Shown here in pieces: positions 11,393 to 63,806 of a stretch of 64,000 nt of DNA. A model generated the notes under the pieces. That model was not told the DNA's origin and made no database searches. It saw only the letters and a program-made list of their open reading frames with translations. The stretch's first letter is position 1. Every line of letters starts with the position of its first letter. This DNA comes from Ascidiella aspersa (lineage: Eukaryota): NCBI GenBank assembly GCA_963924565.1, contig OZ004613.1, positions 13,454,001 through 13,518,000 of the forward strand, written 5' to 3'. The position numbers and the translations under genes were made by a program.

Positions 11393-14326
11393 ATGGGACT
11401 GCTTGCCTTGCTAGTTTATGCTGTCTTAACTTTGGCCTGGCAAGTCCAAAGTGTAGAATGGGCTATCTTGGGTAGCGACCACGAACCTTTCGAGCAAGTG
11501 GCTGAAGTAGATGACATCACTTCGTCCAATTTTCAGCAGCTGTACGTTGCTAAAAATACCCCTTTGATCATTCGAAAGGCGCTATCAGGAACTAAACCCT
11601 TGGCTTTATGGGACGATCAATACCTGACAAGGGTACACGGCGATGTTGAGGTGAATATTGACCCGACCAAGTACGAAGACCGCTCGAAACCGAGTGTAAG
11701 CATGTCGCTTGCTGACTTCTTGACAAAATACCGCAACAAGGAGTATTATCTTATCGACACTCTACCCGATTCGCTGCAAATGGAATTCCCTATCCCGGAT
11801 ATGTTACGCTGCGATGGATTTCTAGACAGGCTGCAGGTAAATTTGATTTTAGATAAGCCCAGTTTTATACAACATCTGACGGTCTAATTTAAGAAAGAAT
11901 GGCTTTTACATAAAAGTAAAACCATCCAAAAAAATTAAAACCCAAATTCAAAACAAACCCGGTATTTTCTTGGGTGAAACAAGCAAATCAGTAGAACGAT
12001 AAGACTATTCGTCAAGTTAAAAGCAAAAGGTGTGGTTTGAGTATTTACTAACAATTATGAAAATGCGCTGTTATGCTGGCAAATAGGCTTTTGCATTTGG
12101 AGTAGGCCTACACCTAAATTATTAGAAAAAAAAACTAAAAATGAAAAGATAACGAGAATATAGAACAATAAATACCAAAGTACATATAATACAACCCTTG
12201 AAAGAAAACCGCTTAACAAACTCGCAGTAATACAAGGTTAACAATAAAAGGCAAAACCCCTCGAAATCAATTTCCTTATAGACTTCTATGAAATTGTAGA
12301 ACAACCACACAAACACCGAACTTTATTTTATGTATTTTGTACTATATTTGAGTTTTAAAATTAATTTCATCTATAATTTTAAGATAAGACGAATTGACAG
12401 TTTGTCAAATGGTTGACCATCTTACTCCAAATTTTGAACACAAAGTAGTAAAGTTGGCCTCGATCATTTGACAGAAAACTTTTTGCTAAAAACTTACAAT
12501 GCTTCAAATGCTCTAATTTCCAGGATTTTGTTTGGTGGTTCAGCAGCGGCGGAAGCTTGTCGACTCTTCACTTCGACAATGTGGAGAACCTATACTGTCA
12601 GATATCAGGAGAGAAGAAATGGATATTCGTCGATCCGGTCAATGGCTCCAAACACATTCCTCTGGACCATCCTGAAGGTCTGGCAAACCTGAAACGAGTA
12701 AAAATAATAATTTATTTATAGAAAGTACGTTGGTCAACTCATTTACTATAAATCTCCATAGGTCACTACTGCGGCGTGAACGTTTCAGCCGTTGATTTCA
12801 ATTTATACCCAACTCTTAAGGAGATGCCCTACAGGTCTGCTGAAATAAACGCAGGAGATTGTCTCTACGTTCCACTGAAGTAAGCATGCCCTAATACAGG
12901 TGTAGCCATCTTATGTTTGATGTCGATCGACTGAAATAAATTTTTAGAGACCCTCAAACGACTGCTTCGGTAAAAAAGGCACAGAAACAATATTTTGAGA
13001 GTTAATTGCATTCCAAGCCAGCGATGGAGGTTAATTTGTTACGCCAAAGAACATATTAGGCTTATTAGGCTTACCCAATGGCGTAACACATATTCGACGC
13101 GATCGACCAAGTGGAATGCGGTCGATCGCGATCGACGTGTTGGCTACCCCTGCCCTAATAGGTTATTTTATTTTAAGTTTCTCAAATGTGTCATTTGTCA
13201 ATCATTTCGAATCACCGACATTATGCTTGAACGAAGGATTTTTCCTATTGTTATTTTTAAAAATAGTTTAGGCCTACGTAAACCTTAAAAATAAATTGAT
13301 ACTTAAATAGAAACCTGGGGTAACACCTTTGGTGCAATATCAGAAATTTGTCAATGCATAAACTCAGTTCCGCCATTTTTTGTTCGTCAGCTGGTGGCAC
13401 CAAGTACGCAGTTCCCCGGACCGCAACATGGCGGTCAACGTTTGGTGGGCTCCCAGTCTCGACGCAGCAGTAGACGACTTTCCATGCGAGATGCGCAACC
13501 AAAGCGAGCTCAGCCTCTCCGACCTAAGCTTCACTTACGGCGAGTGGATTCGCTTCAGCCTGGCGCAGCTGGCTGGGCAAAACGGTGGCAAGCTTGACTA
13601 TGGGACGATGCGCGAACGCGTGGTGCACGAACACACTGGACAGAAGCTGGTGACTAGGCGCTCGTTCGAATTGCTGGATTCAGACAGAAACGGTTTCGTC
13701 GAATTGGGCGAACTGCGGCAACACACTGCCAGGACAATACACGACGCCGTTCAACAAGTACCAGTCGGTAAGTAATGGTTTGTACTTAGGAATACCGAGT
13801 AGATTTTCACGCCTTAAAACGTTAAAATATAATTAGTTTTAAATTACGACGGTCGTAAGATTCACACACTGAATTTTAAATGGGCGATTCGTTTTCTGCC
13901 TAGTGCAGGTATTATCCTTAGAACTTATAGCGGATCCTGAAACTCGTTGGGGCTCAACAAAAGTATGCATCACTACAGAGTGTCATTTTACGGTCTTCCT
14001 TATGTATATTAGTTTATATCATTATCCTACTCTATTGGCATTTCTCTTCCACTAAGAAAAATAGCAAAAATCACTCGACTATAGTCGAAATGCACATATA
14101 CCACTTTAGATGTGTAATCAGTTTCCAAAACTTATTCTTAGGCAGGTTAGTAAGACTTTAATACACTTACACAGTTATGGTAACAATGCTATGAATGTTT
14201 CCTCAGCAAACCAAAGGCCGTTTCCGTTTAGGTGCAATGAACATTAATGGAGAAGGGGGACGGTCGGGCGAATACGATGAAGCAACGACCAAAGATTCGT
14301 GTGAAGGCAACGGAAAGTGCGGATAA
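11393..14326 (+). CDS. Secretory-pathway JmjC (cupin-8, JMJD7/TYW5/FIH-like) 2-oxoglutarate dioxygenase with C-terminal EF-hand, 395 aa
   Basis: Exons 11393-11836, 12524-12677, 12762-12879, 13391-13767, 14232-14326 (1188 nt, in frame, GT-AG). Hydrophobic N-terminus MGLLALLVYAVLTLAWQVQS. Motifs TPLIIR, WWFSSGGSLSTLHFDNVENLYCQISGEKKW (HxD plus 2OG Lys), AGDCLYVPLNWWHQVRS (distal His), EF loop DSDRNGFVELGE. Confidence 0.88.
12897..13152. mobile_element. hAT-type MITE in JmjC intron
   Basis: TIRs CAGGTGTAGCCA / TGGCTACCCCTG (1 mismatch), perfect 8-bp TSD CCCTAATA (12889-12896, 13153-13160), subterminal GATCGAC repeats. Confidence 0.88.
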
Positions 14327-43508: not shown

Positions 43509-46500
43509 TCACTCCCACACGTGGCGGCTGCAATGCTCGAATGCCTGTAAATTGATAAATTTATACGCAACCACGACTTGAAGCCGCCTAGGCAGAAGAA
43601 CGTCTGCTGATCTCGGTAAAACTCTTTACTGACGAATTAACGCCGCGAATTAGAATGAAAAATATTATATTTGTTTTTCAAAAGAAAGGCTCCTTAAACT
43701 TTATGGGTAAAACACGTACCAAGTGTAAGTTTGTAGCAAATCTTTCCCTCTATAGGCACTATATGGATAGATGTTGTATAGCTATTTGTGGCGGTAAAGG
43801 GGTAGAGTTGTTATAACTTAGACACAACGTAAACAGTTAAACGTACAAAGTAATAACATCGTTTTAGGTTGTCAATAAACAAAGAGTTTCAATAAACAAA
43901 GGGTTTTAAAATAATTTTGTTACTGTTATCACTGATCTTAGTTATTTATCTTACAGGCTGCTGCAGTAATAAAACAAACTTCAGACAAACACTATGGAAG
44001 CCCATGAACCATGTTGTCTGCTTGCAAAAATATATTTCGGAAATCACCAGTATTGACAATTTTGTTCTAAAAATTAAATATCACGTCGCACTGCGTTAAA
44101 TTACTCGCCGCTAAACGCGGGATTGTGTTGTCTTGGAGCATGTCAAGCCTAACTTAAACCTAAAAGCAAATTTAAAGATAAAACCTTGAATGTCTATGCG
44201 TCAGGTCGGGTGAAATAATCTCGTTTTACGATTCACTTACGTTGCATTCGCGGGCGGCCTTCTCACTGCTGCACCAGTAGGACGGTCCGTAGGTACATGG
44301 ATTAGCACCGATGATCACATGGGCACTAGACGAACCGCAGACGCCAATTTTCTGTGGACAAAAATGTACGATATATGATATATATATTAGAAAAATGAAT
44401 TAAAATTTTAAAATAAAGTAGATGCAGCCAACATGACATCAAATTAATATAATAGTGCATTTAGTAATTCACACAATGATATCAATTACTTATCTAAAGT
44501 TAAAAAAATGTTCTAAAAAGCCATTTTTCGTACAAAACAGCCCAACAAATGTTGTTGAAATGTGACATTTGTAGCATGACTACTCACTTTTTTACTGCAA
44601 AGCAGGTTAATTTATGGCTATACAATTGCAAAGCAATGCAAAAAAAGAAGAAAAAAATTTTTTTTAGGTGAAGGACAATTAATTTTTTTCAAAATTTTAG
44701 CCCAAATCTGAATTTTCAAATTGACGTAGCACGGTCAATACTGAACCAAACGTGCTCAGATTTGTTTTGTGGGGTTTTTAGACGTAACCTAACAATTCCA
44801 GGGGGTCCACACTAAAATTTGACAAAAAAGTGTTTTTTTGAACAACCCTAATATATATATATATATATACTAAAGGCAAATAATTAGAGCAAACTGCGAC
44901 GATTGTTTAAATTATAATCTGTCCTCTAATTCTGGTTGCAATTTTTTTTTTCTTTATCGAGAAAAAATTGTTTTAGAGTATATACAACGATGAGACGATA
45001 AAGAATTTCATAAAAATACTCTTTAGTGAATTCTACGGACTTAGAGCAGAGGCTATGCTAAAAAATACCAAAAAGCATTTTTGCTAATTTATCTGTATTT
45101 TTGCCTTGAAACAAGTTGATTGGTATACGTTGCGTTTACAATACATTTTACTTAAGTTATTTTTCATAAATACGAGTTTATAATTAACGTTCTATTTTAT
45201 GACAAGGACTTGGTTTGAAGTTGACTTTCTCTAATTATGACTGGACTGGGACTTGACTTAAGCAACCGATGACATGGACTGGGAATTGACTTGTCATTTA
45301 TTTAGAAAATGCTGGACGTAATTTACAAATGACTGACTTGTTTACAACACTGCTATGTTATTTCAGCCCACAAGAAAACAAGCTTCTTTTTAAGTGGCCT
45401 ATCCAAAGATAAAGTCTACTTTTGAACCACCTCTACTATATTTACCGAGCACACGACATCGGGCTGCAGATCGTTTTCCAGCAGCTTGATGATATCTGGA
45501 GTGTATTGCTTCACCAAGTCGTCGCACTGAAACAAAGGCAAACATTATTTTACCGACGAATATAACACAGGTGTTTAAGCAAAAATAAATAAGGTGCAAT
45601 TGCAAATTTTGGATAAGTGAGACTACTTTTTTTCTGGGTTTAAATCCGCTACAGCGGAATTTTGAAAATGTTTTTCGATTTTTGAGGTCATTATAGCATT
45701 GGTAAAAATAGCAATTGTTAGCATTTTTCCTTATAAGAGCAACAACCTGCGTACTACAATGTTAGATTGACGAACAATTCAATAAAACACGAAAAAAATG
45801 TTTTTAATAGGAGGGAAATAATTCGGTCATGACCCGGGGACGACCAAGCACACTATAACCTTTTTTTATCTCATGTTTTACCATAGTGGAATCAGTATAT
45901 TTGTTAAAGTCGTCCTCGCGTCTTAATATTACGTTGTTATATGAAACATTTAAGGTGTAGGCAGAAAAACGGTAAGTCTTTACCGTGGATTTAAGCGGGC
46001 TGGGAAGCTCGCTGCAGACGTTCTCGAGAGCCTGTTCCACTTCCTCTGTAGTGGCGTTTGCTGACAGCTCCTGGTCAACCCACTGCATTGCGATCTGACA
46101 CACTTGGCACAGTTCACCGCTGGCCACTTGCGATTTGTCCACCTGTCGGAACGTTACAATGTTGTTGGTGGGCAACCGCGACATGCAAGGCGTATCGCGG
46201 CGTTTTTGGCGCGCATTCGAAAAGTCAGATCGTAACTCAAACGCTTTTAACTGTTAAATCTGAGCAAATCCGCAAGCGGAACAGCAGGAACAGCAGAAAC
46301 AGCAAATAGCAAGTAAACTGCATAAGCGCATTGTTAGAACTTCGCCAACAGCGGTTATAAACTTAAACATTTATTACACTTTGAAACTGTTTAGTAAAAC
46401 GTGGAGCGTCTAAGAAAGGCCACTATCGAGTACATGTTGAACTTATCTTGATGTTTAGCTTAACGCCTAAAGCGAATCCACGCAGAGATTTGCATAATTT

Positions 46501-49500
46501 ATGTGTACACAACTTTAGTGGATTTGCTAAACAGTGTTATGAAGACTAAAGTTAACAGATTCTGACTTAAGATAGTTATAGTTTATATATTTCACTTAAC
46601 TAAAGTCATTTGGGAAAATTACTTCGTTTTGACAAAAAAGAGCTTTTGTTTAACAAAAATTTATTATTATAATTATTATTAGGTTGTTGAACGAAACTTT
46701 GTATACGTAAAATGGTTTGGATACATGTTCACTTTTCTGTGACAAACGACTTCACTTGTACTAAATCAGGAATCGAAAACCTATGTTAGTATTGCCGGGA
46801 CGCGCAGATTGCACAAAATAACATGGACATAAAAAAATTTTTTTTTAATTTGAAGTTAAAAAATATCACATTCATATCATAAAAAATTAGCAACATTTGT
46901 ATGATAAAATACTTTTTAGTGCTAGTATTCTATTTACTTGTAAGTAGCAAGCATTGGAGAACCAAAGCAAGGAAATAATTACGCACAAACATTAATTGAT
47001 AGATCTAATATGCCTAACGGTGCAACATTAGATTGTCAAGCAAGGCGCATGTGGCACGCGGAGCGCTGCACGGATCTGTAATGTGCTTGATAACGAATTG
47101 CAAAGCCAAAGGTCGAGTAAATCGACTATACTCTAGATTTCAGATTAAGACGTTTCGATACGTACTTGTATCATCTTCAGTTAATGTGACTGAGATAAGT
47201 GATGCTTTGACTTACTTCTCAGTCACACTAATTGAAGATGACACAAGTTCGTATTAAAACGTCTTAATCAAGATGATGTCGATCTACTCGACCCTTTTGG
47301 CTTAAAAAAATATTGTTTTTGACAATGTCGCAGGTCAAGAGGCGCTTACCAAAGCGTTCGAGCAGAGTTTAAGTTCCGAGCAGAGTGCATTAGGTGAGAT
47401 TTGCTGAATGAGCAGTTGGACAAGCGCCTCTCCGTTGGTGGCAAGAAAGTCAACGCACTGGGCTTTGAGATCTCCTGGTAGAATGTCGCACACCTTCTCT
47501 ACCACAACAACGATCTCGGCCTAAAAAACGAAATGACGGATTTCGTTGCAGACGCAGCGTGTGGAAGTGACGCACAAAATAACGAGTTTTTTTGTTAAGT
47601 TAGAAGACATTTCATTGATATATAGCTTATGTAAAGTTTTAATTGTTTTGAGTACCTTTTTTGCCGTATTTTTTTATTGATTTTGCTTTTATTTGTAGCG
47701 ATAATTTTGTTGAAGCCCATCATTTTTTAACATAAATTGTTTTACTCTCCTTATTTCTTTAGTTGCTATACTATTCCTATTTAGAGCATTAGCTGGTATT
47801 TCAAGCATCGAGTGATAATTGGCATAAATAGTTAATTAAATTTAACAATCTTTTCTAAACCTATATAACAAATTTTGCTTAAGAAGTCTACAAATAATAG
47901 GCTAAAGTGTATTTGTTTATGTGCTTTCGTCTTGTGTAATAGATATTAATTTGTACTTTACAGGTACGATTCTTGAAGGGTTATAGGCTCTAAGAGTTAA
48001 ACACGGTTCGTTACCACTTTGGAATGTTTAAATATTTCATCTAATTGTGTTTGAATTTATATTTTATTCATTGAAAAAGGGAGAGCTCAGTAGTTTTTCT
48101 GTGGGTAAAGCAGATATACTGAATAACATACTTTGGTTGAGTTTTCATTCAGCAAATTGTCGAGTTCTGTTGCAATCAACTTGCAGATATCGCATTCGGT
48201 GGTCGACTTCACTGGAGAGACCTGTACACGTAAACAAGTTTAACATAACTAGATTCTTTAAACCAAGCCATTCTTAACTTTTGAGTTCATTTCTTTTTGC
48301 AATTTTCATCCATTACACATCCAAGGTTGTTTAACATAAACCCTGCCCATTAGAGCAGCGGTTCCCAAACTTTTCTAAAAATTTTGCCTGGATGTCCCTT
48401 TGCATTGATTTTGATATTTCGCGGCCCTATAAAACAAGGGTCAGTTGACCCATGTTTCTTGTACTGGTGCAGTCACGAATCTTTCTAATGTAACAACTTT
48501 CTGAATAATATGAACGATTCGCTGAGACATCATAATAGATGCTTTAGATGTCACAAGAGACATCATAAAATACGCGTTTTTATCTAATAATAAAGTATAA
48601 CTAAAGACGAAGAATAATGACAGATAAGGTTTAAAACATTGACTAATGTCTAAAAACTTAAAGACTAATTCTCTTTGCGGACCCTCTGAAACTGCTGCAC
48701 GGACCCCAGTTTGGGAACCGCTGCATTAGAGCCTTATGTAAAACAAATCGTTAATTGTAAGGGAGGTGTGTGTTGTAAAACGAACTCCTGTTACAACCTC
48801 CCGCGAATGGGGCTGAACCCGCAACTTTTGACTTACGGCAACTCCTGAGCAAAGGCCAAGTTTAGAGCAGAGTTTGGGCGGGGGCACAAGGCTGACAAGA
48901 AGTTCCACTATGGTTGATCCGTATTTCTCGATGAAGCTGTCGCATTCGGCTTGGTAGGCTGCAGGCAGAATCCTACAGACACTTTCGACTACCGCTTCGA
49001 TTTCCTTCTGTGAAAAAGTCGGTTGGCTTAACTTAACGTTGACACAATACGCACCGTTCTATATTGCGAGTGGCATATGCAGAAAAAAAGGACGTATGCA
49101 GAAAACGACATACCCATGTAAACTTAAAACAAGTGGTGGTTTTAATCTATTGGCGTTAGGTGAGTGCACAAGAACTTGGGAAAATCACTATGGTCTCCAA
49201 GGGTATATGTTTATCATAAATTCAAGTAAATCAATTCATATAAAACAATGTTGTTACAAAAGCATCAGCGTCAGCAGTGTTGCAATACATAAACAAATAA
49301 CTTAGGTTAGCTCGAATGATAAGGACAATTTATTGAAAATTAACACTATCTAATGCGACTTTTCTAACAACTAGATTTTAACCCAAAGAAAACCTATAAC
49401 TACTCTGAAAAACGTTCAAAACGCTACCACTTTTGTTGAGATCGCCGTTTGATACACTTGATTATCCCACATTAAAGCATAAAATAAGTACAATAATTTC

Positions 49501-52500
49501 CCTATTTATTATTTAATTGCAAAAAAATCAGTGTTTTAAAAGCTTCAGCGCCTTGCATAGTAGGCAGAAACGTTTCCGAACCTCGGTTTGCCCAGCTTCC
49601 AAAAGGTGCTCCAGTTCTTGGACGATTATATCGCACAGTTCGCAGGAATCTCCCAAGCTGGCCTGGAAGCAACACAAACAAAAAGTAAGTTAGAGCTATA
49701 TTGATTTTACTTGGGTCGCAGCAATTTGTGCTTTGTTCGAATTACTCCTAACTTTAAATTAGCAACTTTTATTGCACATGGTATATGTAATTAATAATCA
49801 TGCTTCTCTCCAGGCATTAAAATAGCGTTAGCCTTATACAATTAAGATTCATATTGCACAAAAACAACAGTCATAATTGTATTTGCTATACGAGTCTACG
49901 AAATGTGCAATTGAACTTTATTAAATTAAAATTGCAATTTGGCCATCTAACGGAGTCAGTTGGAAAACGCAGCCTGGAACTAAAGCTCTACGCACTTTTC
50001 CTTTTATTTTTAGGCAAACCTGAAAAATCTTGTGAATTTACCTTGTGATATGAAGTACAGAGTTTGAGCTCCTTGCAAATGGCGGAAGGCGTGAGTTTAT
50101 TGATCAACAGTTGGATAATCTGGTCACCGTAAGTGTCGATCAGTGTGTCGCACTCCGACTTGAGTGTACTTGGCAACAAATTGCAAACCCCTTTCACCGC
50201 TTTAACGATCTCTTCCTGAAAATACCGACACAACATGTATGTTTACTTATGGGCAACACTTCGGTTGGTTACAACGTTATTCGTTACCATTGACGAATAA
50301 TTGTGAATGATACAACGGAAAAGCATAGCACCATGCATCACACCCTTAAATGTGATTTTAAGTTTTTGTTTAGGGCCGTAGGGGTGAATTTTAAACACTA
50401 GGTGAAATTCAAATATATGTTGTGCTAGCTAATATTAATATCCGATAACACCTGATCGCAGCAAACAATCAAAGTCTTATGGTAGTATCGGTAGTCAACA
50501 GATAGTAGGGTGGTATCGGACAAAAAAGTTCTTGCGTATTTCAGCCATGGTTTGTAATCCCATAAATTTTGTTAATTTGTGACAGTAATGAAGTCATTTG
50601 GTATCGGTTCGTATGGCCGTAATTACGTACATCGGTTTCGAATTAAATACAAAGAATTTAATAAACAATAAGATTTTGCCCTAATGCCATGCCCGAGAAA
50701 GTATTCCGAAATTCGTGGCGAAACACTTACCTCCGTGCTGTCTTTGGTGATCAGCTGTTCGAGCTCAGTAGCTACAGCCTGGCAAATGGTGCACTCCTCG
50801 TCTGACGACACGTGCTGAAACCAAATGGAATTATCGTTATTTGGAGGCGGTTAAAGTTTCAATTGTCGGCATACATATTTATTCCAGAACATTGCAAAAA
50901 CAGTTTATAAGCGTGTTTCGAAACAATGTTGAATATGTTAGTAATAAACATAATAGGTAAAAAAGCGGAAAGCCGCGACCTATATCATATTTTTTAAGTC
51001 ATTCTTTACACAAAGCCATTCTTAACTTTTGAGTTCATTTCTTTTAGCAATTTTCATCCATTACACATCCAAGGTTGTTTAACATAAACCTTGCCCATTA
51101 GAGCAGCGGTTCCCAAACTTTTCTAAAAATTTTGCCTGGATGTCCCTTTGCATTGATTTTGATATTTCGCGGCCCTATAAAACAAGGGTCAGTTGACCCA
51201 TGTTTCTTGTACTGGTGCAGTCACGAATCTTTCTAATGTAACAACTTTCTGAATAATATGAACGATTCGCTGAGACATCATAATAGATGCTTTAGATGTC
51301 ACAAGAGACATCATAAAATACGCGTTATTATCTAATAATAAAGTATAACTAAAGACGAAGAATAATGACAGATAAGGTTTAAAACATTGACTAATGTTTA
51401 AAAACTTAAAGACTAATTCTCTTTGCGGACCCTCTGAAACTGCTGCACGGACCCCAGTTTGGGAACCGCTGCATTAGAGCCTTGTGTAAAACAAATCGTT
51501 AATTGTAAGGGAGGTGTGTGTTGTAAAACGAACTCCTGTTACAACCTCCCGCGAATGGGGCTGAACCCGCAACTTTTGACTTACGGCAACTCCTGAGCAA
51601 AGGCCAAGTTTAGAGCAGAGTTTGGGCGGGGGCACAAGGCTGACAAGAAGTTCCACTATGGTTGATCCGTATTTCTCGATGAAGCTGTCGCATTCGGCTT
51701 GGTAGGCTGCAGGCAGAATCTTACAGACACTTTCGACTACCGCTTCGATTTCCTTCTGTGAAAAAGTCGGTTGGCTTAACTTAACGTTGACACAATACGC
51801 ACCGTTCTATATTGCGAGTGGCATATGCAGGAAAAAAGAACGTATGCAGAAAACGACACACCCATGTAAACTTAAAACAAGTGGTGGTTTTAATCTATTG
51901 GCGTTAGGTGAGTGCACAAGAACTTGGGAAAATCACTATGGTCTCCAAGGGTATATGTTTATCATAAATTCAAGTAAATCAATTCATATAAAACAATGTT
52001 GTTACAAAAGCATCAGCGTCAGCAGTGTTGCAATACATAAACAAATAACTTAGGTTAGCTCGAATGATAAGGACAATTTAGAGCCATTGAAAATTAACAC
52101 TATCTAATGTGACTTTTCTAACAACTAGATTTTAACCCAAAGAAAATCTATAACTACTCTGAAAAACGTTCAAAACGCTACCAGTTTTGTTGAGATCGCC
52201 GTTTGATACACCTGATTATCCCACATTAAAGTATAAAATAGTACAATAATTTCCCTATTTATTATTTAATTGCAAAAAAATCAGTGTTTTAAAAGCTTCA
52301 GCGCCTTGCATAGTAGGCAGAAACGTTTCCGAACCTCGGTTTGCCCAGCTTCCAAAAGGTGCTCCAGTTCTTGGACGATTATTTCGCACAGTTCGCAGGA
52401 ATCTCCCAAGCTGGCCTGGAAGCAACACAAACAAAAAGTAAGTTAGAGCTATATTGATTTTACTTGGATCGCAGCAATTTGTGCTTTGTTCGAATTACTC

Positions 52501-55500
52501 CTAACTTTAAATTAGCAACTTTTATTGCACATGGTATATGTAATTAATAATCATGCTTCTCTCCAGGCATTAAAATAGCGTTAGCCTTATACAATTAACA
52601 TTCATATTGCACAAAAACAACAGTCTTAATTGTATTTGCTATACGAGTCTATGAAATGTGCAATTGAACTTTATTAAATTAAAATTGCAATTTGGCCATT
52701 TAACGGAGTCAGTTGGAAAACGCAGCCTGGAACTAAAGCTCTACGCACTTTTCCTTTTATTTTTAGGCAAACCTGAAAAATCTTGTGAATTTACCTTGTG
52801 ATATGAAGTACAGAGTTTGAGCTCCTTGCAAATGGCGGAAGGCGTGAGTTTATTGATCAACAGTTGGATAATCTGGTCACCGTAAGTGTCGATCAGTGTG
52901 TCGCACTCCGACTTGAGTGTACTTGGCAACAAATTGCAAACCCCTTTCACCGCTTTAACGATCTCTTCCTGAAAATACCGACACAACATGTATGTTTACT
53001 TATGGGCAACACTTCGGTTGGTTACAACGTTATTCGTTACCATTGACGAATAATTGTGAATGATACAACGGAAAAGCATAGCACCATGCATCACACCCTA
53101 AATGTGATTTTAAGTTTTCGTTTAGGGCCGTAGGGGCGAATTTTAAACACTAGGTGAAATTCAAATATATGTTGTGCTAGCTAATATTAATATCCGATAA
53201 CACCTGATCGCATCAAACAATCAAAGTCTTATGGTAGTATCGGTAGTCAACAGATAGTAGGGTGGTATCGGACAAAAAGTTCTTGCGTATTTCAGCCATG
53301 GTTTGTAATCCCATAAATTTTGTTAATTTGTGACAGTAATGAAGTCATTTGGTATCGGTTCGTATGGCCGTAATTACGTACATCGGTTTCGAATTAAATA
53401 CAAAGAATTTAATAAACAATAAGATTTTGCCCTAATGCCATGCCCGAGAAAGTATTCCGAAATTCGTGGCGAAACACTTACCTCCGTGCTGTCTTTGGTG
53501 ATCAACTGTTCGAGCTCAGTAGCTACAGCCTGGCAAATGGTGCACTCCTCGTCTGACGTCACGTGCTGAAACCAAATGGGATTATCGTTATTTGGAGGCG
53601 GTTAAAGTTTCAATTGTCGGCATACATATTTATTCCAGAACATTGCAAAAACAGTTTATAAGCGTGTTTCGAAACAATGTTGAATGTGTTAGTAATAAAC
53701 ATAATAGGTAAAAAAGCGGAAAGCCGCGACCTATATCATATTTTTTAAGTCATTCTTTACACAAAGCCATTCTTAACTTTTGAGTTCATTTCTTTTTGCA
53801 ATTTTCATCCATTACACATCCAAGGTTGTTTAATATAAACCTTGCCCATTAGAGCAGCGGTTCCCAAACTTTTCTAAAAATTTTGCCTGGATGTCCCTTT
53901 GCATTGATTTTGATATTTCGCGGCCCTATAAAACAAGGGTCAGTTGACCCATGTTTCTTGTACTGGTGCAGTCACGAATCTTTCTAATGTAACAACTTTC
54001 TGAATAATATGAACGATTCGCTGAGACATCATAATAGATGCTTTAGATGTCACAAGAGACATCATAAAATACGCGTTATTATCTAATAATAAAGCATAAC
54101 TAAAGACGAAGAATAATGACAGATAAGGTTTAAAACATTGACTAATGTTTAAAAACTTAAAGACTAATTCTCTTTGCGGACCCTCTGAAACTGCTGCACG
54201 GACCCCAGTTTGGGAACCGCTGCATTAGAGCCTTGTGTAAAACAAATCGTTAATTGTAAGGGAGGTGTGTGTTGTAAAACGAACTCCTGTTACAACCTCC
54301 CGCGAATGGGGCTGAACCCGCAACTTTTGACTTACGGCAACTCCTGAGCAAAGGCCAAGTTTAGAGCAGAGTTTGGGCGGGGGCACAAGGCTGACAAGAA
54401 GTTCCACTATGGTTGATCCGTATTTCTCGATGAAGCTGTCGCATTCGGCTTGGTAGGCTGCAGGCAGAATCTTACAGACACTTTCGACTACCGCTTCGAT
54501 TTCCTTCTGTGAAAAAGTCGGTTGGCTTAACTTAACGTTGACACAATACGCACCGTTCTATATTGCGAGTGGCATATGCAGGAAAAAAGGACGTATGCAG
54601 AAAACGACACACCCATGTAAACTTAAAACAAGTGGTGGTTTTAATCTATTGGCGTTAGGTGAGTGCACAAGAACTTGGGAAAATCACTATGGTCTCCAAG
54701 GGTATATGTTTATCATAAATTCAAGTAAATCAATTCATATAAAACAATGTTGTTACAAAAGCATCAGCGTCAGCAGTGTTGCAATACATAAACAAATAAC
54801 TTAGGTTAGCTCGAATGATAAGGACAATTTAGAGCCATTGAAAATTAACACTATCTAATGTGACTTTTCTAACAACTAGATTTTAACCCAAAGAAAACCT
54901 ATAACTACTCTGAAAAAGGTTCAAAACGCTACCAGTTTTGTTGAGATCGCCGTTTGATACACCTGATTATCCCAAATTAAAGTATAAAATAGTACAATAA
55001 TTTCCCTATTTATTATTTAATTGCAAAAAAATCAGTGTTTTAAAAGCTTCAGCGCCTTGCATAGTAGGCAGAAACGTTTCCGAACCTCGGTTTGCCCAGC
55101 TTCCAAAAAGTGCTCCAGTTCTTGGACGATTATTTCGCACAGTTCGCAGGAATCTCCCAAGCTGGCCTGGAAGCAACACAAACAAAAAGTAAGTTAGAGC
55201 TATATTGATTTTACTTGGATCGCAGCAATTTGTGCTTTGTTCGAATTACTCCTAACTTTAAATTAGCAACTTTTATTGCACATGGTATATGTAATTAATA
55301 ATCGTGCTTCTCTCCAGGCATTAAAATAGCGTTAGCCTTATACAATTAAGATTCATATTGCACAAAAACAAGTCTTAATTGTATTTGCTATACGAGTCTA
55401 CGAAATGTGCAATTGAACTTTATTAAATTAAAATTGCAATTTGGCCATCTAACGGAGTCAGTTGGAAAACGCAGCCTGGAACTAAAGCTCTACGCACTTT

Positions 55501-58500
55501 TCCTTTTATTTTTAGGCAAACCTGAAAAATCTTGTGAATTTACCTTGTGATATGAAGTACAGAGTTTGAGCTCCTTGCAAATGGCGGAAGGCGTGAGTTT
55601 ATTGATCAACAGTTGGATAATCTGGTCACCGTAAGTGTCGATCAGTGTGTCGCACTCCGACTTGAGTGTACTTGGCAACAAATTGCAAACCCCTTTCACC
55701 GCTTTAACGATCTCTTCCTGAAAATACCGACACAACATGTATGTTTACTTATGGGCAACACTTCGGTTGGTTACAACGTTATTCGTTACCATTGACGAAT
55801 AATTGTGAATGATACAACGGAAAAGCATAGCACCATGCATCACACCCTCAAATGTGATTTTAAGTTTTCGTTTAGGGCCGTAGGGGCGAATTTTAAACAC
55901 TAGGTGAAATTCAAATATATGTTGTGCTAGCTAATATTAATATCCGATAACACCTGATCGCAGCAAACAATCAAAGTCTTATGGTAGTATCGGTAGTCAA
56001 CAGATAGTAGGGTGGTATCGGACAAAAAGTACTTGCGTATTTCAGCCATGGTTTGTAATCCCATAAATTTTGTTAATTTGTGACAGTAATGAAGTCATTT
56101 GGTATCGGTTCGTATGGCCGTAATTACGTACATCGGTTTCGAATTAAATACAAAGAATTTAACAAACAATAAGATTTTGCCCTAATGCCATGCCCGAGAA
56201 AGTATTCCGAAATTCGTGGCGAAACACTTACCTCCGTGCTGTCTTTGGTGATCAACTGTTCGAGCTCAGTAGCTACAGCCTGGCAAATGGTGCACTCCTC
56301 GTCTGACGACACGTGCTGAAACCAAATGGAATTATCGTCATTTGAATGCGGTAATAAGTATTATATGTCAGAATACACACTTATTTTAGTATTATTGGTA
56401 AAACGTTTTAAAAACGTTTGGAGAGAATGTTAAAATATGTAAAGCTAAGTGAATAAAACAAAAACTGTTAAATAACTAAATTTCGGGGGTAAACGGACAA
56501 GATCATTTTATTAACTAGGATACATTTTTAATATATTAGGAAATCGTTGCTTATGTTGAACGAGTGAGAAACAAGGTAAGTTTATTAAGTGCTGCGTTGA
56601 CGCTAATTCACCATGCTGTGCATGCTTAACACTTGATGCAACACATCAAAACATACTGTGATTGGAAAGCTAATCAAGCAGTAAACTAATAGGACTTTTT
56701 GAAATTTATATTTTACACAGAGACAAGTCAAAAGGATAGCTGAACAAAGTTTGCGAAACGCTGAACTAAATTAAGTATACGTAATCTCTTTTCCAATCAA
56801 AACAAAAACTCAGTTAATTTTGTTTATAGCAAAACTGAGTCAAATAGTAAATATCGATTACAAATACTTTCAGAATTTTGTCATTAGTTCTGTAGGTAAA
56901 TACCTTGGATATTTAAAAAATTATACAATAAACTCGGTTTGGTCGCTCTACAAAGCAATAAGTAGCATCCAGTCTTCAAATTGATCATTTCAATTTTTAT
57001 TATTAACCTTTCTAATGTTGTTTACTTAATAATTGATTTCAGGTCAATGCCTTAATTATGTAAAAAAAGAAACCAATTTTAAAATGAAAAAACGTTCAAA
57101 ACATAAGGTATTTCAGTCCGTTAAATGCTTCAGAGAGGTAGCGACACTAAAAATGTAAGAAACCAATGATATATACGTACAAGCAGGGTACAGTGTTTGG
57201 AAAGAGGTTTCTCCCCTAACGTCGGTCACATTAAAATAGAGTAAAACAAACCCTAATAGACGACGAACAGAGATTGATTAAAGTGCACAGTTCGCTGGGT
57301 GTAAAGCCGTTTGCGAGGGCCTCGATGATTAGGCGTCCGTACTCGTCCACAAGGTTTTCGCATTCGGTTTTTATGGTTGAGGGTAGCAGGAAGCACACCT
57401 GCTCCAACGCACTCACAATCGCTGCCTGAAAGATGGGAAGAAAATTTGTCAAAATTAGTTTGACGCGACGACTCGGGTAGAATTGATTTTCCAGCGTGCG
57501 TTTGAGATGATTTCAAAAATAAAACTACATGAACTGTTCTTTCTGGCGCTTGTTGGCAAATTCACAGTTTTGTGACCCATAGAATTCGAGGGGAATTTGC
57601 AACAACAAATATTTGTACAAAACACACACGACAATCGTTAATTGCAAGAAACATTTTTTGAATAAAAAGGCGGTACAGACAAAGTTTGCTTAAAAAGTTA
57701 GGTAATGAAAATATGGCCTCAGTTATATGAAGTGTAATGCAGTCAAGTTTTAAAAGGCAATATATAAAATTAATCGATATTGCTTCGGTTACTTGCCCAA
57801 GTTTTTTAAGACTATGGTACACTTCAATGCGCTGGAGTAATTTTATTTTATATTTTTTGCTAAAAGTTAACAAATCAACAAAACCCTGACCCCTAGTGGC
57901 CTCGCACGATTCACCACAAATTCGGCTTGAACCTATATTATTGATTTTGCAATACTTATGTGTTCACAAAGTAAAAGTTGGGATTATATAAGCCTACGCT
58001 GACCAACAGGCTTCAAATGTAAAGGCCAACACCGTTTTAGCAAAGAATTAACAAATCAACGGCGCAGCGAATTTAAATTGCTTACTATGCCTCTTACAGC
58101 TGGCTTCAACAAACCTGCGCTTCGATTAGGGGGAAATGCATTTTGTAAAGTTTTTACGGTGTTACAAAACGACAAAAACGCATGAAAATGGAAAGACAAA
58201 TTGATGCAACTTAAAACACGAAACAAATAAATCCAGTATAACTAATAACCTGGAGTTATTATAGTGAGTTATACAAATACAATATTAACGAACCTCAGTA
58301 TTGTTGTCCTTCAAAATATTCTCCAGTTCCCCAGCTACGGCTTTGCAGATGGTGCACTCCGTGGAATCGCTAACCTGCGCACAAAATACAGATCAAATAT
58401 AGTTTCTTAAAAAAAATTTTTTTTGGCCGTCGGGCATAATTTTTTGCATATTAAAAGATTTAACCTTGCAATGTTTAGTTTTTCGTAAATCTAAGAGGAA

Positions 58501-61500
58501 AACTTATTTCCTTTTTTAAAGAACTATATTTTAGTCCAGTGCTTCCCAAACACTGGGTCGCGACGCATTTATAAATGTTACAGTTGTCTGTTAGATCTGG
58601 AAATATTGCATTATCGTTACGTAACATTGCGTTTGAGCTTGTCTCCAATCAAGTCTCGACTTAATCTTATAATATCCAATATGCAAGCTCAAGTTTCGCA
58701 TTAATTTGTTTTTCATTCGTTTGGTCAAATCTCATTGTGGGTCGCACAACACAACTTGCATTATAAGTGGGTCGCGAACTGAAAAAGGTTGGGAATCACT
58801 GCTAGTCATTTCGCAAGGCAAAATTATTGAATTTTATTTCTCAGGAAACAACATTTCACCACTTTTCAGGCTACCTTAATAAAGGAAGTGCAGAGTTTGA
58901 GCTCCTTGCAAATGGCGGAAGGCGTGAGTTTATTGATCAACAGTTGGATAATCTGGTCACCGTAAGTGTCGATCAGTGTGTCGCACTCCGACTTGAGTGT
59001 ACTTGGCAAAACATTGCAAACCCCTTTCACCGCTTTAACGATCTCTTCCTGAAAGTATCAATCATTATTATTTAGTCATTGACCGACATTGACTGGCGAC
59101 TTTCCACGTTATTTTGGAACAACGTTTCAGGTTACACGCGATAATTGATCGTTCTAAAAAAAAGGGTGGATGCACGGCGAGAATTGAATAACGTTGCGTT
59201 AGAATTTGTGTACCCCAAATGCACCATTGCTAACAAGTCCTTTTAAATTTAAGTCTAAGTTATTGCCATAACAATAGTAATTCGTTTACTTATTAGCACC
59301 ATAAAAAGTAAACTTTTTAATATTAGTAAACTTGTACGACCCTAAGCGGTATATCGATTAGCAAACATCAGAAACGTAACACATAGCGCGCAAACTGATA
59401 TAAAAGCAGAAGTCAGGGTAAAAAACTAAGCTAGCTTTTCGAAAAACATTTACTTGGAACACCTAGATAACTTTGTTTTTTTAATTTATTTCATTACAAC
59501 ACTGTCGAAAAGTTTGAAAATTACGAACGCAATTTTGACCAGATTTAAATATTCGCAATTTTTTTAACCGAAAATATAGGGAGCGTTGGTAAAGTTTTCA
59601 ATAAATCCGATTTTTTTGCTGTTGATAGTCGAGCATTTTTTTTTTAATCAAAAATTAAAATTAAACGCTTTAAACCGAAAGTGAAAGTGTCATTGGCTTT
59701 ATAGAAAACTTTGAGTGTATGTTGGACTCGTTAATCAATCCAATGGAACTGAACGGCATAGTTTATTTTTCTATACAATGCTTAACACCTACCTCCGTGC
59801 TGTCTTTGGTAATCAACTTTTCAAGCTCGGTTGTTATGGCTTGGCAAATAATGCATTCCTCGTCCGACGACACGCTCTAAAACAATATAGGGTTTTTGGA
59901 TTGAAATTCTAAAAGGTCGAGCAATTTAAGCAAAAAAAGTAATTAAAACATAGCTACAAATCACAACATGTGCAATTTTCTCCATTTCATTCGGAAATAT
60001 TCTCATGCTTTTTATCCTAAAATGTCCAATTTTATTGCTGAAGAGTACGAGATATCTTCGAAAGTTCTTTTGACCTCACGGTATATAATGCGTCACTTAT
60101 ATGATAGATAGCTGTTTGCACTCATTAAGTAAACGGTTGATTAGTTGATACCATAGCAGTTTATGCTAAATTTACTGGGGCGTTTTATTTATTAATTACA
60201 TCATGCCTAGCCTGTTGTATTACCGACTTTTGGCTGTCTAACAGTAAAACATGTAAGCCAAACCCACTTAAGGTAAATGGGTTTTAGGCATGATGTCGAG
60301 TCTTTTAGAAAATACAATGATTTCATTTTAGGATCCTAATGTGGTCAAGAGCCCTTATTTGAGAAACTACGGTTAAGAGCAACCGATATAAATAAAGGTA
60401 TACAAGAAAACAGCAGTGGACTCTCACCTTTACCGTCATTTCGGTGCAAAGTCTTAATTGGGTGCAGATAACCTGGGGCTGAAGTTCCTTTTTTACCAGG
60501 TCGATCAGCTTCTGGCCGTACAAGTTGATAACGACCTCGCACCCTCCCTGGGCCTCTTTGGGAAGTTTAGTGCATTCGTTTTCCAGTTCTTTAATGATCT
60601 CTTCCTGCATGTACGCAAAAGACAGGAATGGAAACGTCCCACACTTTGTTTATCGCGATACCTAAACCGGTTATCTTTAACAAAGTCTACTGCCGCCCTT
60701 TCCGATTGAAATTAGTTTCGAAAGTAAAATCAGATTGGCAAAATAGGTTAAATTAAGAAAAGAAAGCCACACCAACTATATAACTGAACCATAAATTGCT
60801 TTCCATGTGTAAGTATAGGAAAAAAATATATTGTTAACCATTTTACTGACGTAAAAATTGCTTTAGGGTTAAAACTGAATTTACCTTCAGTTAAAACTAC
60901 CTAAGAAATTAAGGCCGCATAGGAGAGTGAATTAAATGCTTATAATATCGATGTGACCCATTATATGAAGTATCGGCTGCTATCTAATTCTATCCGAAAC
61001 ATCTCCCAAAATCAACGTCCAACGAAAAGGCAAAATTTACCTATGAAATATTTGCCGAAACGTAGTCTTAATCTTTACTCACAAAAAAACTTTTAATAAA
61101 TAGAAATGGTAGCAAAAATTACATAAAAACTTAGGTAGGGGATTTTTTGTTCTAGCGAGTGAGATATCCTTAAAGTGACCTCACTTTACAGTTTGGCCGA
61201 GTAAAGTCATAATATGTGAAACGACAACAGTGATTTCAATCCTTCCTCAATAGACAAAGCGTTATAAAGGTCAAATCAAGCTACACGTCTGCCTCGATAA
61301 TGAGTTTACTTCCCTTTAGTTGCGCTTACAGGCGCTTACAAGATGATTATAACAAACCAATAACGCTGTATATTACGCCAGAAGACTAGCACGACCTGTC
61401 AACTAGATAATTAACACGAGTGAATCTAAAATGATATAATGGATCAGGTTTGAAACAAATAATAAACAAATTTTAAAAATTCAATATAAAAATGGCGAGC

Positions 61501-63806
61501 ACAAAACGGCTTTCAAGTTGCCGTTGGTTGTTGGAACTTTTATTTAAATTTCTGTGTGAGAAACTATTAATATATTAGCAAATTTAAAAGTTCGAAGGTC
61601 AACAGAATACGGGCATTTCGATGTTTACAGTTAAGTTTAACACATAGGACTACATACATCGGTCATGTTGTTGTTGAGAAGGGTTGACACCATGTAGGTA
61701 AAGAGGTTGCATAATTCACACTCAATGGTGGGGGAATCCTGAAAAAAAAAGACAAGTTTAAATAGTTTTAGTCAAAGAGTCGCAACCCACTTGAAATTTT
61801 TAAACAGTTTCGGTCGAACCTTTATCGCGACGGTGCTTTTGCAAAGTCCGATTGAGCTGCAAAGCTGGTCAGGCTTCAGACCCTCTAGGAGCTTTTGGAT
61901 CAGCAAGGGACCGTACATGTCAATGAGGGTATCGCACTCCGTCTTGTAATCTGAAGGCAGCACCGAGCAGACTTTCTCAATCGCCGCGACAATTGCTTTC
62001 TGCGAGGTGGTGGCAAAACATTTACAGTAAAACTTGGGCACTGTCGCAAAGTTAAACGGTAAGGTTCCCAAATACAATACCCTTCTTAACATTTATTTAG
62101 ATAATACGAACTGTGTTAAAAAATAGCCCTATGCCGGAACGCCATCTTAGCCAACTATCAAATAGTATTAATCAAGATACCTCTTCTGGTAATTATTTTT
62201 GTTCCCTTCGAGGTGAAAAACAAACAGTTACCACAGTCTATTTTGATTAATATTATGCCTAGCTGGTGGGTTCCGACACAAATTTGGTATCCACACAGTT
62301 GAGAACTACATTACGGTTAAGAGTTTTTAGAAAGTCTGCATTACAATAATTATACAACATGCAGCAGAGAGTACACCGAAAGCCATCGCATACTCGCCGA
62401 ATCTGTCGATCAATGATGCAAGTAAGGCAAGCTAGAAACACAACTAGCCTGCAGCGAGGTTCGAACACACGACCTCCGGTCAAGCCGAACCTCGCTCTAC
62501 CAGCTGAGCTATACAAGTATACAGGCTTAAAGAGGAGCGAGTCGACAAACAACCATACGCCAATGCTTGCTACATTCTGTTAGTACAAGCAACTTCCCGT
62601 TGAAGGAGATGTACAGTACCATAAAATCATTCAACGAAAAAAATACACACGTAGGTGTTCATCAACAGTGATCAAAGCCCTTCTCAAGGTGCTTTTAAAA
62701 AAGACAGCTTCGGAAGGGTTCGATCACAGATGTTAAACACATATGTGTGACTTGTGTGTGTATCGTTCATTGAATGCAGCAGAGAGATTTCCACATAACG
62801 TACCTCGGTGCTGTTTTCCTTGAGCAAGTTTTCCAGTTCGGTGGCCACCAACTCACAGAGCTCGCAGGCGGTGTTGTCGCTGACCTAAAAATGTTTTGTC
62901 GTGAATCGACTTCAGTGCGAGACATTATTTTCGTGCGCAATTTAAATGCCAAGGTCAACTTGACCACTCATTTGGACTAGCTACTTCTTAGGTTACGCAA
63001 ATTACGCGATTCGGAAGCTATGGGTTTTCACGGATTTTTTTATAATGCGTGTGTGCAGCATGAGTTAGTGCTGCAAGCGTGCCAAAACATTAGTTTACTT
63101 TTCTTCCTGTTACTCTGGAAGCGCTACTAGACTTTACCTAAGATTTTATATGCATAATGTATTACAACTTGGCTCAACTGTCAGTTAAGATTTGGATGTC
63201 CATCGTTTATATACTATTTAATTTCACAAGGTGATTTTATTCTGTTGAATAAACAGAAGTTTGCCTGGGCAGAACAACATACGCCAGAACTACTTCATTT
63301 AAAATTATTATGAACAACGTTAATAAAACAAAACGTTATACTGTGTTCAAATTGTTTCCCTATAAAAATAGTTTGCTTGATGAACGTGTAGCTTTTACAT
63401 GTTGTGGTGACGACTTGGATACAAAACTGAGTAGTTTGAGATGCATTGTTATTTTAAATCACCAGGCAAATGAGAAGAAAACTACTTAACTCGGACTATC
63501 GTCTTTTCTAAATTACTTGGTAAACTATAGGAAAACCACAGAGATTCGTCAAAACGTTAGCTTAGCAACAAGTGTAGTTTGCTGAAACATTCGTTTAGCA
63601 ACAAATGCGTAGCAAATATAACGAATTTTAACCTTTACAGCACTACTGGTGCACAGCCCGAGTTCCGAGCAGATTTCTTTGGGTGTTATGGTGTCGAGAA
63701 GAATTATGATTTTTTCTCCGTACATCGTGATAAGCTGGTCGCACTCCGACTTGAACGACGAAGGAAGAATCTGACAAACTTTTTCGACTGCGGCTATTAT
63801 CTCTGC
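43509..63806 (-). CDS. PSAP: Prosaposin with expanded saposin-B array (5' part outside window): at least 13 SapB domains plus C-terminal SapA
   Basis: 27 exons, all GT-AG and phase 0: 63806-63633, 62884-62804, 61999-61820, 61738-61658, 60604-60428, 59876-59793, 59048-58875, 58374-58294, 57425-57252, 56315-56232, 55717-55544, 55166-55086, 54506-54336, 53565-53482, 52968-52795, 52415-52335, 51755-51585, 50814-50731, 50215-50042, 49662-49582, 49007-48837, 48221-48132, 47520-47350, 46142-45984, 45526-45446, 44351-44241, 43544-43509. Each complete domain has the six saposin cysteines. The C-terminus KIGVC..GANPCTYGPSYWCSSEKAARECN|AFEHCSRHVWE* matches the prosaposin SapA tail. Confidence 0.95.
45200..45352 (-). 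mobile_element. Second member of the CAGTGTTGTAAAC/AAGTC-repeat family
   Basis: Ends GTTTACAACACTG at 45352, with GACTT/GACTGG repeats upstream. Confidence 0.55.
47103..47303. repeat. ~200-bp imperfect palindrome (foldback element) in prosaposin intron
   Basis: Left arm aagccaaaggtcgagtaaatcgac...gattaagacgttt...tgtgactgagataagt mirrors right arm acttacttctcagtcaca...aaacgtcttaatc...gtcgatctactcgacccttttggctt around a ~9-nt loop. Confidence 0.9.
48356..48723. mobile_element. hAT-type MITE, 368 bp (copy 1)
   Basis: Perfect 16-bp TIR CAGCGGTTCCCAAACT / AGTTTGGGAACCGCTG and perfect 8-bp TSD CATTAGAG. Confidence 0.92.
51104..51471. mobile_element. hAT-type MITE, 368 bp (copy 2, duplicated with the tandem unit)
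   Basis: Same TIRs and same TSD CATTAGAG as copy 1. Confidence 0.92.
53855..54222. mobile_element. hAT-type MITE, 368 bp (copy 3, duplicated with the tandem unit)
   Basis: Same TIRs and same TSD CATTAGAG as copy 1. Confidence 0.92.
58537..58801. mobile_element. hAT/Charlie-like MITE
   Basis: TIRs CAGTGCTTCCCAAAC / GGTTGGGAATCACTG, subterminal GGGTCGC repeats, partial TSD (TAGTC on both sides). Confidence 0.7.
62446..62526 (-). pseudogene. tRNA-derived sequence (tRNA pseudogene or SINE head)
   Basis: Minus strand reads GCCTGTA-tacttgta-TAGCTCAGCTGGTAGAGCG...GTTCGAACC..TGCAGGC. A box, B box and acceptor stem GCCTGTA/TGCAGGC are present, but there is no canonical anticodon arm and there is an 8-nt insertion. 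Confidence 0.7.

Follow-up and report, generated by a model that had tools for sequence, protein, structure and literature searches.

How many saposin domains can a single prosaposin gene carry, and by what steps did it acquire them? The question is raised by a stretch of 64,000 nucleotides (nt) from the ascidian Ascidiella aspersa, hereafter the window, which corresponds to positions 13454001-13518000 (plus strand) of contig OZ004613.1 (C7 in our contig numbering) in an assembly of 308.6 Mb and 75 contigs, and which contains no N and no gap. Vertebrate prosaposin (PSAP) is the textbook four-domain lysosomal precursor, defects of which lead to Gaucher-like, Krabbe-like and metachromatic leukodystrophy-like disease. 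On the minus strand of the window, we found the back two-thirds of a prosaposin gene of ~41.6 kb, running from an ATG at 85070 to a stop codon at 43509. Our data support the conclusion that this locus is probably the genome's single PSAP orthologue, coding for a secreted or lysosomal polyprotein of ~1,964 amino acids (aa) in which 21 SapB domains occupy B, C and D slots that have in part been amplified.

A six-frame reading revealed the alternation, along the minus strand, of a short CxxC exon and a longer four-Cys exon. To follow the gene beyond the window edge, 30 kb of upstream sequence were added as three loci (L004, 63001-73000; L005, 73001-83000; and L006, 83001-93000), and the extended coordinates used here are window numbering run on past 64000, from which 63000, 73000 or 83000 is subtracted to obtain positions in L004, L005 or L006, respectively. 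The resulting model comprises 59 exons with a coding sequence of 5,895 nt (1,964 aa and one stop codon), has an AG acceptor and a GT donor at every intron, and shows no frameshift or broken splice site. More specifically, its layout is signal peptide, SapA, a first SapB domain, six B-type domains (B1-B6, 82056-66174), 13 C-type domains (C1-C13, 65607-47350), one D-type domain and a second SapA (i.e., 21 SapB domains), with three exons for the first SapB domain, four for each B-type, two for each C-type and three for the D-type domain. All introns after exon 2 are in phase 0, which makes exon duplication, loss, skipping and exchange frame-neutral and thereby explains how the array could grow. 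The six-Cys SapB pattern (C-x2-C...C...C...C-x5-C, spanning 73-75 aa) is present in 21 of 21 domains, and the 136 Cys residues of the model divide into 21x6 in SapB, 2x4 in SapA and 2 in the signal peptide. Linkers, measured from Cys6 to the next Cys1, are 10-16 aa long in the C array and 12-38 aa elsewhere. Exon 1 opens with the first ATG after an in-frame stop and carries a short hydrophobic leader (MMKFTVLCLLLCSLQ) directly before the SapA exon; by direct reading, it is predicted to code for the N-terminal signal peptide. SapA was matched in Pfam at both the N terminus (E 4.5e-16; L006:1474-1602) and the C terminus (E 6.6e-09; 44241-44351). At four sites (C1.2, C3.2, C4.2 and C2.2) an alternative in-frame donor lies 6-12 nt away, and the lengths of those exons are uncertain accordingly. 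Outside the 59-exon model, an extra 90-nt phase-0 candidate exon (83155-83066; L006:66-155) lies between the first SapB domain and B1 and has a weak counterpart in a Phallusia protein (67% over 15 aa, E 0.2); as a probable linker exon, it would add 30 aa at this point.

Database searches were run with single exons, the joined model being used only for length, Cys counts, local protein comparison and domain trees. Within the window, single exons matched the Pfam families SapB_1, SapB_2 and SapA with E values down to 9e-15, which is far beyond chance. Here, exon 1 of the C-type domains measures 81-90 nt (short linker, CxxC, helix 1 and an end in T-E, T-D, T-K or T-Q), and exon 2 measures 168-180 nt, starts with xEI or xAI and contains four Cys. 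A preliminary description of this stretch had placed 12 complete SapB domains and a partial one at 43509-63806 and had proposed that the gene continues past the window edge. Its exons proved to be as described (AG/GT, phase 0, Pfam-matched), and its domain count was exact, with 11 C-type domains and one D-type domain complete and exon 2 of C2 as the partial one; the exon sizes, linker lengths and end coordinates agreed with our splice-site inspection, as did the differing layout of the last domain (159 + 81 nt, running into the SapA exon), and upstream extension raised its minimum of at least 13 SapB domains to 21. The window therefore holds these 12 domains, the C-terminal SapA and exon 2 of another C-type domain, as listed below from the 3' end of the gene (all on the minus strand).

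43509-43544, terminal coding exon of 36 nt with AG acceptor and phase 0: 11 codons plus the stop (43509-43511), ending AFEHCSRHVWE and completing SapA; AATAAA/ATTAAA motifs lie nearby at 43126, 42854 and 42816.
44241-44351, D-type exon 3 (111 nt): codes for Cys6 (KIGVC) and for the first part of the C-terminal SapA.
45446-46142, D-type exons 1 and 2: 45984-46142 (159 nt) and 45446-45526 (81 nt), SapB_1 7e-12 and SapB_2 3e-11.
47350-48221, C13: exons 48132-48221 and 47350-47520, SapB_2 2.7e-09.
48837-49662, C12: exons 49582-49662 and 48837-49007, repeat unit 1, 96-97% protein identity to C8 and C10.
50042-50814, C11: exons 50731-50814 and 50042-50215, repeat unit 1.
51585-52415, C10: exons 52335-52415 and 51585-51755, repeat unit 2.
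52795-53565, C9: exons 53482-53565 and 52795-52968, repeat unit 2.
54336-55166, C8: exons 55086-55166 and 54336-54506, repeat unit 3.
55544-56315, C7: exons 56232-56315 and 55544-55717, repeat unit 3, SapB_2 8.8e-15.
57252-58374, C6: exons 58294-58374 and 57252-57425.
58875-59876, C5: exons 59793-59876 and 58875-59048.
60428-61738, C4: exons 61658-61738 and 60428-60604, the most divergent C-type copy with a long tree branch, SapB_2 4.3e-09.
61820-62884, C3: exons 62804-62884 and 61820-61999, SapB_2 1.2e-12.
63639-63806, C2 exon 2; its exon 1 lies 155-235 bp past the window end (L004:1155-1235).

That these exons belong to one giant prosaposin gene, as the preliminary description had claimed, was borne out in two ways. 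First, ascidian proteins bridge the slot boundaries: the Phallusia protein aligns to model residues 72-1096, i.e., across the B-to-C junction, and the Styela protein to residues 65-1923. Second, a Pfam profile search of the 308-Mb assembly returned only two SapA matches, which are the two ends of this gene. Consistently, we detected no internal signal peptide, SapA or stop along the 59-exon model, and 14 of the 15 SapB_2 matches in the genome fall within the gene; the remaining match (contig C1:737574-737663, minus strand, 27.6 bits) presumably represents another saposin-like protein. The idea that the genome has another PSAP gene, of the canonical four-domain kind, was rejected, as the assembly contains no further SapA match. 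The best protein matches are all ascidian, with Phallusia mammillata closest (46.6% identity), followed by Ciona, Clavelina and Styela. Being the only SapA-bearing gene in the genome, the locus is therefore best read as the prosaposin orthologue and not as an extra paralogue.

To assign the slots, we compared exons with solved structures and placed the domains in trees. The C-type exon 2 profile scored highest against human saposin C (62 bits), followed by saposins D (55), A (37) and B (25) and by granulysin (20.9), and C-type exon 2 begins at the KEIL position of saposin C. The first D exon had human saposin D as its best match, and the B-type exon 1 profile matched, among saposins, only saposin B (E 0.014). 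A bootstrap tree was built from 61 domains of the A. aspersa gene, Ciona, Clavelina, amphioxus, Ptychodera, a fish, platypus and a bat; like our other domain trees, it draws on ~78 columns, too few to resolve the backbone among A, C and D-like domains. In this tree, the six B-type domains formed a clade with the tunicate B-type domains and vertebrate saposin B (support 100/98), and the D-type domain formed one with the last domains of Ciona and Clavelina, amphioxus domain 6 and vertebrate saposin D (95/83). These clades give good support to the B slot being orthologous to vertebrate saposin B and the D slot to saposin D. For the C slot, approximately unbiased (AU) tests placed a tree in which the tunicate C-type domains were held with saposin C 0.23 log-likelihood units above the free tree (p-AU 0.49), whereas holding them with saposin A or saposin D cost 6.8 units (p 0.27) and 12.7 units (p 0.21), respectively, with neither grouping rejected; orthology to saposin C is compatible with these values. 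The proposal in the preliminary description that the multiplied slot is saposin C accordingly stood on its two-exon structure, its position between B and D, the profile match and the AU test, and failed to gain a C clade in the free trees, so that "saposin-C type" is the best-supported label for these domains, with phylogeny no proof of it. As regards exon structure, the C-type domain of A. aspersa is encoded by two exons and split after the sequon, and its D-type domain is split before Cys4 and between Cys5 and Cys6, with the last intron inside SapA. Introns at corresponding positions were reportedly described in the human PSAP gene by Rorman and colleagues in 1992. Saposin C variants at residues 349 and 382 have both been placed in PSAP exon 10 (PMC12864279), a weak and indirect indication that intron positions are shared.

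We then asked how the C slot came to hold 13 domains. Part of the answer is old: C1 groups with Ciona domain 5, Clavelina domain 5, Phallusia domain 7 and Styela domain 12; C13 with Ciona domain 9 and Clavelina domains 7 and 10 (99/89); C8, C10 and C12 with Clavelina domains 6, 8 and 9 (C8, 98/92); and C5, C7, C9 and C11 with Phallusia domain 10. Ciona, Clavelina or Phallusia thus share at least five C-type subtypes with A. aspersa, and an array of at least ~5 C and 3 B modules would therefore be old in ascidians. The other part is recent. By repeat search and self-BLAST, we detected a tandem array at 48253-56440 (2.98 copies of a ~2,750-bp unit, a period beyond the limit of 500 of Tandem Repeats Finder), in which each unit contains four exons and hence two C-type domains. 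Adjacent units are 98.7% identical and copies 1 and 3 are 97.4% identical, introns included. C7-C12 derive from these units: C7, C9 and C11 do not differ at all in the domain core (Cys1-Cys6 plus two flanking residues on each side), and C8, C10 and C12 have 96-99% protein identity to one another, in comparison with a mutual identity of 28-58% among the other C-type copies. The latest amplification is therefore that of a two-domain, four-exon block and not of a single module. Serial amplification of a C-type unit had been proposed beforehand; the array itself is confirmed, whereas the newest unit is this 2.75-kb block in place of a single two-exon module, much of the array is old, and multiplication was not confined to the C slot, since the B slot has also reached six copies. 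In addition, exon 2 of C5 (58885-59054) is 98.2% identical over 170 nt to exon 2 of C7, C9 and C11, with identity that stops within a few bases of the exon borders, unalignable flanking introns, and an exon 1 that is only ~80% identical to its C7/C9/C11 counterparts; this pattern looks like an exon-sized gene-conversion tract.

The six copies of the saposin-B slot all lie upstream of the window. By means of a homology search combined with a splice-site scan, we found eight extra phase-0 exons with AG/GT borders in the introns of five of the six B modules, whereas the same scan revealed no alternative exons in the C array. These candidates, all on the minus strand, are as follows.

79185-79120 and 78901-78845 (L005:6120-6185 and 5845-5901): candidate alternative exons 2 and 3 of B2.
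76454-76398 (L005:3398-3454): candidate alternative exon 3 of B3.
72665-72600 and 72267-72211 (L004:9600-9665 and 9211-9267): candidate alternative exons 2 and 3 of B4.
70280-70224 (L004:7224-7280): candidate alternative exon 3 of B5.
68177-68115 and 67297-67241 (L004:5115-5177 and 4241-4297): candidate alternative exons 2 and 3 of B6.

The alternative pair of B2 shows 83% identity over 41 aa with Phallusia residues 233-273 (E 4e-33) and 80% over 25 aa with the Styela protein; the "standard" pairs of B4 and B6 match segments of Styela at 68-70% identity, and one of these segments is present in isoform X3 only. Inclusion of both versions would give eight Cys per module, and their use is therefore probably mutually exclusive, as the annotations of relatives also suggest: in the NCBI isoforms of Styela clava, a 40-aa exon pair or single 17-19-aa exons are swapped in B-type modules. 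These observations bear on whether the 21-domain protein is the main product of the gene or only a maximal model, with actual transcripts using subsets of domains through skipping or mutually exclusive use of phase-0 exons, so that mRNAs would encode far fewer domains or chimeric ones. We regard the latter as a possibility to be taken seriously, albeit one we are inclined to doubt. It is favored by the phase-0 introns throughout the model, the eight extra B-module exons with their Phallusia-like pair, the Styela exon swaps, a Styela clava isoform that skips a whole 88-aa C-type domain, and hemichordate isoforms (Ptychodera and Glandiceps) that differ by one whole SapB domain (87-92 aa). In contrast, almost the full set of domains is retained in the longest isoforms annotated for relatives (Styela, 3,148-3,236 aa), skipping in relatives affects one module at a time, and no alternative exons were detected in the C array. 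Similarly tentative is the further proposal that the B slot acts as a set of combinatorial cassettes (up to 2^5 = 32 different B arrays from one gene) which, together with a fast-evolving and probably copy-number-variable C array, would form a diversifying lipid-recognition repertoire derived from a lysosomal housekeeping gene.

To consider what the enlarged protein might do, we examined the chemistry of its domains. All 21 are acidic (pI 4.05-4.61, net charge -5 to -10), as are vertebrate saposins A-D by the same analysis (pI 4.05-4.79), and 13 of the 21 domains retain the conserved N-glycosylation sequon at Cys1+17. Within 48132-59876, we observed KDSTE or AGQTE in place of the sequon in precisely those copies that were amplified or homogenised recently (C5 and C7-C12). 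Because its domains are acidic, the gene is single-copy and the architecture is SapA-flanked, the canonical prosaposin route is the most likely mechanism. Following vertebrate prosaposin biology, the precursor would enter the endoplasmic reticulum and then be directed to acidic lysosomes or secreted; cleavage in the 10-38-aa linkers, by analogy with vertebrates and Drosophila, would release acidic saposins of ~9 kDa; these would lift sphingolipids or other lipids from membranes for hydrolases, or activate the hydrolases; and the enlarged B and C arrays might supply a higher dose as well as a broader lipid or enzyme specificity. A cationic antimicrobial saposin-like protein (SAPLIP) of the NK-lysin/granulysin kind was ruled out, since every domain is net negative and the precursor is SapA-flanked and multi-domain, unlike the single-domain precursors of such peptides; NK-lysin-type chains also fell far short of saposins C and D in the C-type profile search. 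In the functional idea of the preliminary description, the C array would be a library of secreted effectors that digest lipids outside cells or attack membranes in immunity, comparable to the multi-peptide systems of amoebapores, naegleriapores or NK-lysin, instead of a precursor of lysosomal activators. Vertebrate saposin C is the membrane-perturbing, fusogenic member of the family, the old C copies have diversified, amplification has been rapid and recent, the glycosylation sequon has been lost in the recent copies, and independent expansions occur in filter-feeding or grazing invertebrates, all of which would fit such a library. Nevertheless, we consider it unlikely: the strong acidity of every domain is opposed to the cationic nature of NK-lysin and granulysin, both SapA domains and the conserved PSAP C-terminal tail are kept, and the only prosaposin of the genome must also serve a housekeeping role. 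A secreted digestive or membranolytic role could possibly have been added to that role.

Several observations weigh against our preferred reading of the locus as a single, 21-domain PSAP orthologue with amplified B and C slots: (i) exon 1 of the first domain matches saposin D better than saposin A among the solved structures, and in the trees this domain groups with tunicate first domains, apart from vertebrate saposin A; (ii) C-type domains, vertebrate saposins A and C and tunicate first domains form a comb in the bootstrap tree, and only C1 joins vertebrate saposin C with any support, in the quick tree only (Shimodaira-Hasegawa-like approximate likelihood ratio test, SH-aLRT, 86); (iii) the sequon is missing in B4 and in 7 of the 13 C-type copies (C5 and C7-C12), including all six recent ones; (iv) processing, trafficking and lipid activity are inferred only; (v) the 21-domain model is drawn from the genomic sequence of Ascidiella aspersa alone; and (vi) the 1-2% divergence of the repeat units lies within the allelic heterozygosity of ascidians, which is of the order of 1-2%, so that a haplotype-derived false duplication is possible, though the stretch is gap-free.

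The last point leads to the suggestion that assembly has inflated the domain count, the 2.75-kb units being alleles or a collapsed or expanded repeat, in which case the true gene would have 17 or 19 SapB domains. The high identity of the units, which extends to their introns and is similar to ascidian heterozygosity, is what such an artifact would leave. However, the window shows no gap or N, the units keep exact register and their splice sites are intact, Styela has comparable near-identical runs (domains 13-16 and 21-25), and the graded divergence, in which adjacent units are closer than the outer pair, fits successive duplications better than two alleles; we therefore judge inflation improbable. 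Divergence among the units amounts to 0.4-0.8% of sites in exons and 1.1-2.3% in introns, with no copy disabled, and the recent C copies thus look maintained. It is very improbable that some exons of the array are non-functional copies in decay that recent duplication has swept along: although the sequon has gone from the seven C-type copies named above and the youth of the recent copies allows no strong judgement on selection, 0 of 59 exons contain a stop or a frameshift or have a damaged splice site, 21 of 21 domains retain their six Cys, and exon differences amount to only ~1/3 to 2/3 of the number expected from the intron rate.

Elsewhere in the window, on the plus strand, two exon-sized open reading frames at 11390-11887 and 13380-13775 belong to a neighbouring gene and match the start and end of Cupin_8 (JmjC-like), followed by an EF-hand, with Pfam E values of ~1e-4 that fall below the curated cut-off.

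With regard to novelty, a profile search of 1.84 billion cluster representatives identified 3,323 SapB proteins, the top matches of which contain 25-33 matched stretches. Long arrays are found in Styela clava (LOC120347581, 3,236 aa), Aplysia (XP_035826565.1, 2,813 aa), Physella (2,806 aa), Bulinus (2,678 aa), Elysia ("proactivator polypeptide," 3,138 aa) and Apostichopus (PIK44812.1, 2,051 aa), and domain counts in the database entries are 31-33 for Styela clava, 25-30 for the gastropods and 18-22 for the sea cucumber. Long arrays are thus already in public annotation, as uncharacterised or mis-named entries, and array length, which the preliminary description had put forward as new unless relatives with equally long arrays were on record, does not hold as a novelty, since arrays of equal or greater length are in the databases. 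The Phallusia and Apostichopus entries carry the automatic name "Pulmonary surfactant-associated protein B," which is a misleading transfer. Searching the literature for prosaposin or saposin together with Ciona, ascidian or tunicate, we found no published description of ascidian prosaposin domain arrays; the only mention of an ascidian prosaposin that we encountered was an entry in a Ciona proteomics paper. A SMART survey reported more than five SapB domains only in arthropods (typically eight) and in two sponge proteins, and called the condition an arthropod autapomorphy (PMC5483003); the tunicate, gastropod and holothurian arrays contradict this generalisation. Tunicates are the sister group of vertebrates, and their single orthologue keeps B-, C- and D-type slots in the vertebrate order; in tunicates, these slots behave as expandable arrays whose amplification is recent and ongoing. 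This offers a natural experiment on what B- and C-type saposins specialise for and on how phase-0 modules let a housekeeping gene grow, and it brings mis-named or uncharacterised giant homologues in public databases to notice. The interest would be greater still if the B-slot cassette system were true.

Among known systems, there is a likeness to the multi-peptide SAPLIP precursors of protists, to which the naegleriapores belong. The prosaposin-like Apl proteins of Dictyostelium are a further case (PMC11542183). These share with the A. aspersa gene the release of several saposin-like peptides from one precursor; they differ in being antimicrobial or pore-forming effectors without the SapA-flanked PSAP architecture, and they are not orthologous. 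Drosophila Sap-r, loss of which leads to lysosomal sphingolipid storage (PMC5483003), is likewise the sole prosaposin orthologue, and its SapA domains flank more than four SapB domains; it differs in having eight of them. The giant gastropod and holothurian proteins also contain tandem arrays, with 22-30 matches to the C-type exon 2 profile, and a pattern search counted 18 full six-Cys domains in the Apostichopus protein; overall, however, they are only 27-32% identical to the A. aspersa model, and because hemichordate, amphioxus and vertebrate prosaposins have 4-6 domains, these arrays are presumably independent expansions.

Among ascidians, homologues are Styela clava LOC120347581 (XP_077973904.1, 3,236 aa), Ciona intestinalis LOC100176110 (XP_026692830.1, 1,145 aa), Clavelina lepadiformis LOC143470198 and Phallusia mammillata CAB3260857.1. 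They share with A. aspersa the slot order and domain orthologues of B1, two B subtypes, C1, several C subtypes and D, and the Styela and Phallusia homologues also share alternative middle exons in B modules. SapB numbers vary from ~10-11 in Ciona, Clavelina and the partial Phallusia entry to 21 in A. aspersa and 31-33 in Styela, and each lineage has its own recent near-identical runs. In common with vertebrate PSAP, the A. aspersa gene has a signal peptide, SapA at both ends, acidic six-Cys SapB domains, the Cys1+17 sequon in most of them, a single copy per genome, B- and D-type domains that are orthologous in trees, and a nearly identical C-terminal tail motif (AFEHC..HVWE in A. aspersa); its two-exon C-type and three-exon D-type domains, the latter running into SapA, may also correspond to the exon structure of the vertebrate gene. 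In contrast to vertebrate PSAP, it has 21 SapB domains instead of four, with the B slot multiplied six-fold and the C slot 13-fold, linkers of 10-16 aa in the C array, a first domain that stands apart from saposin A, and candidate mutually exclusive B exons.

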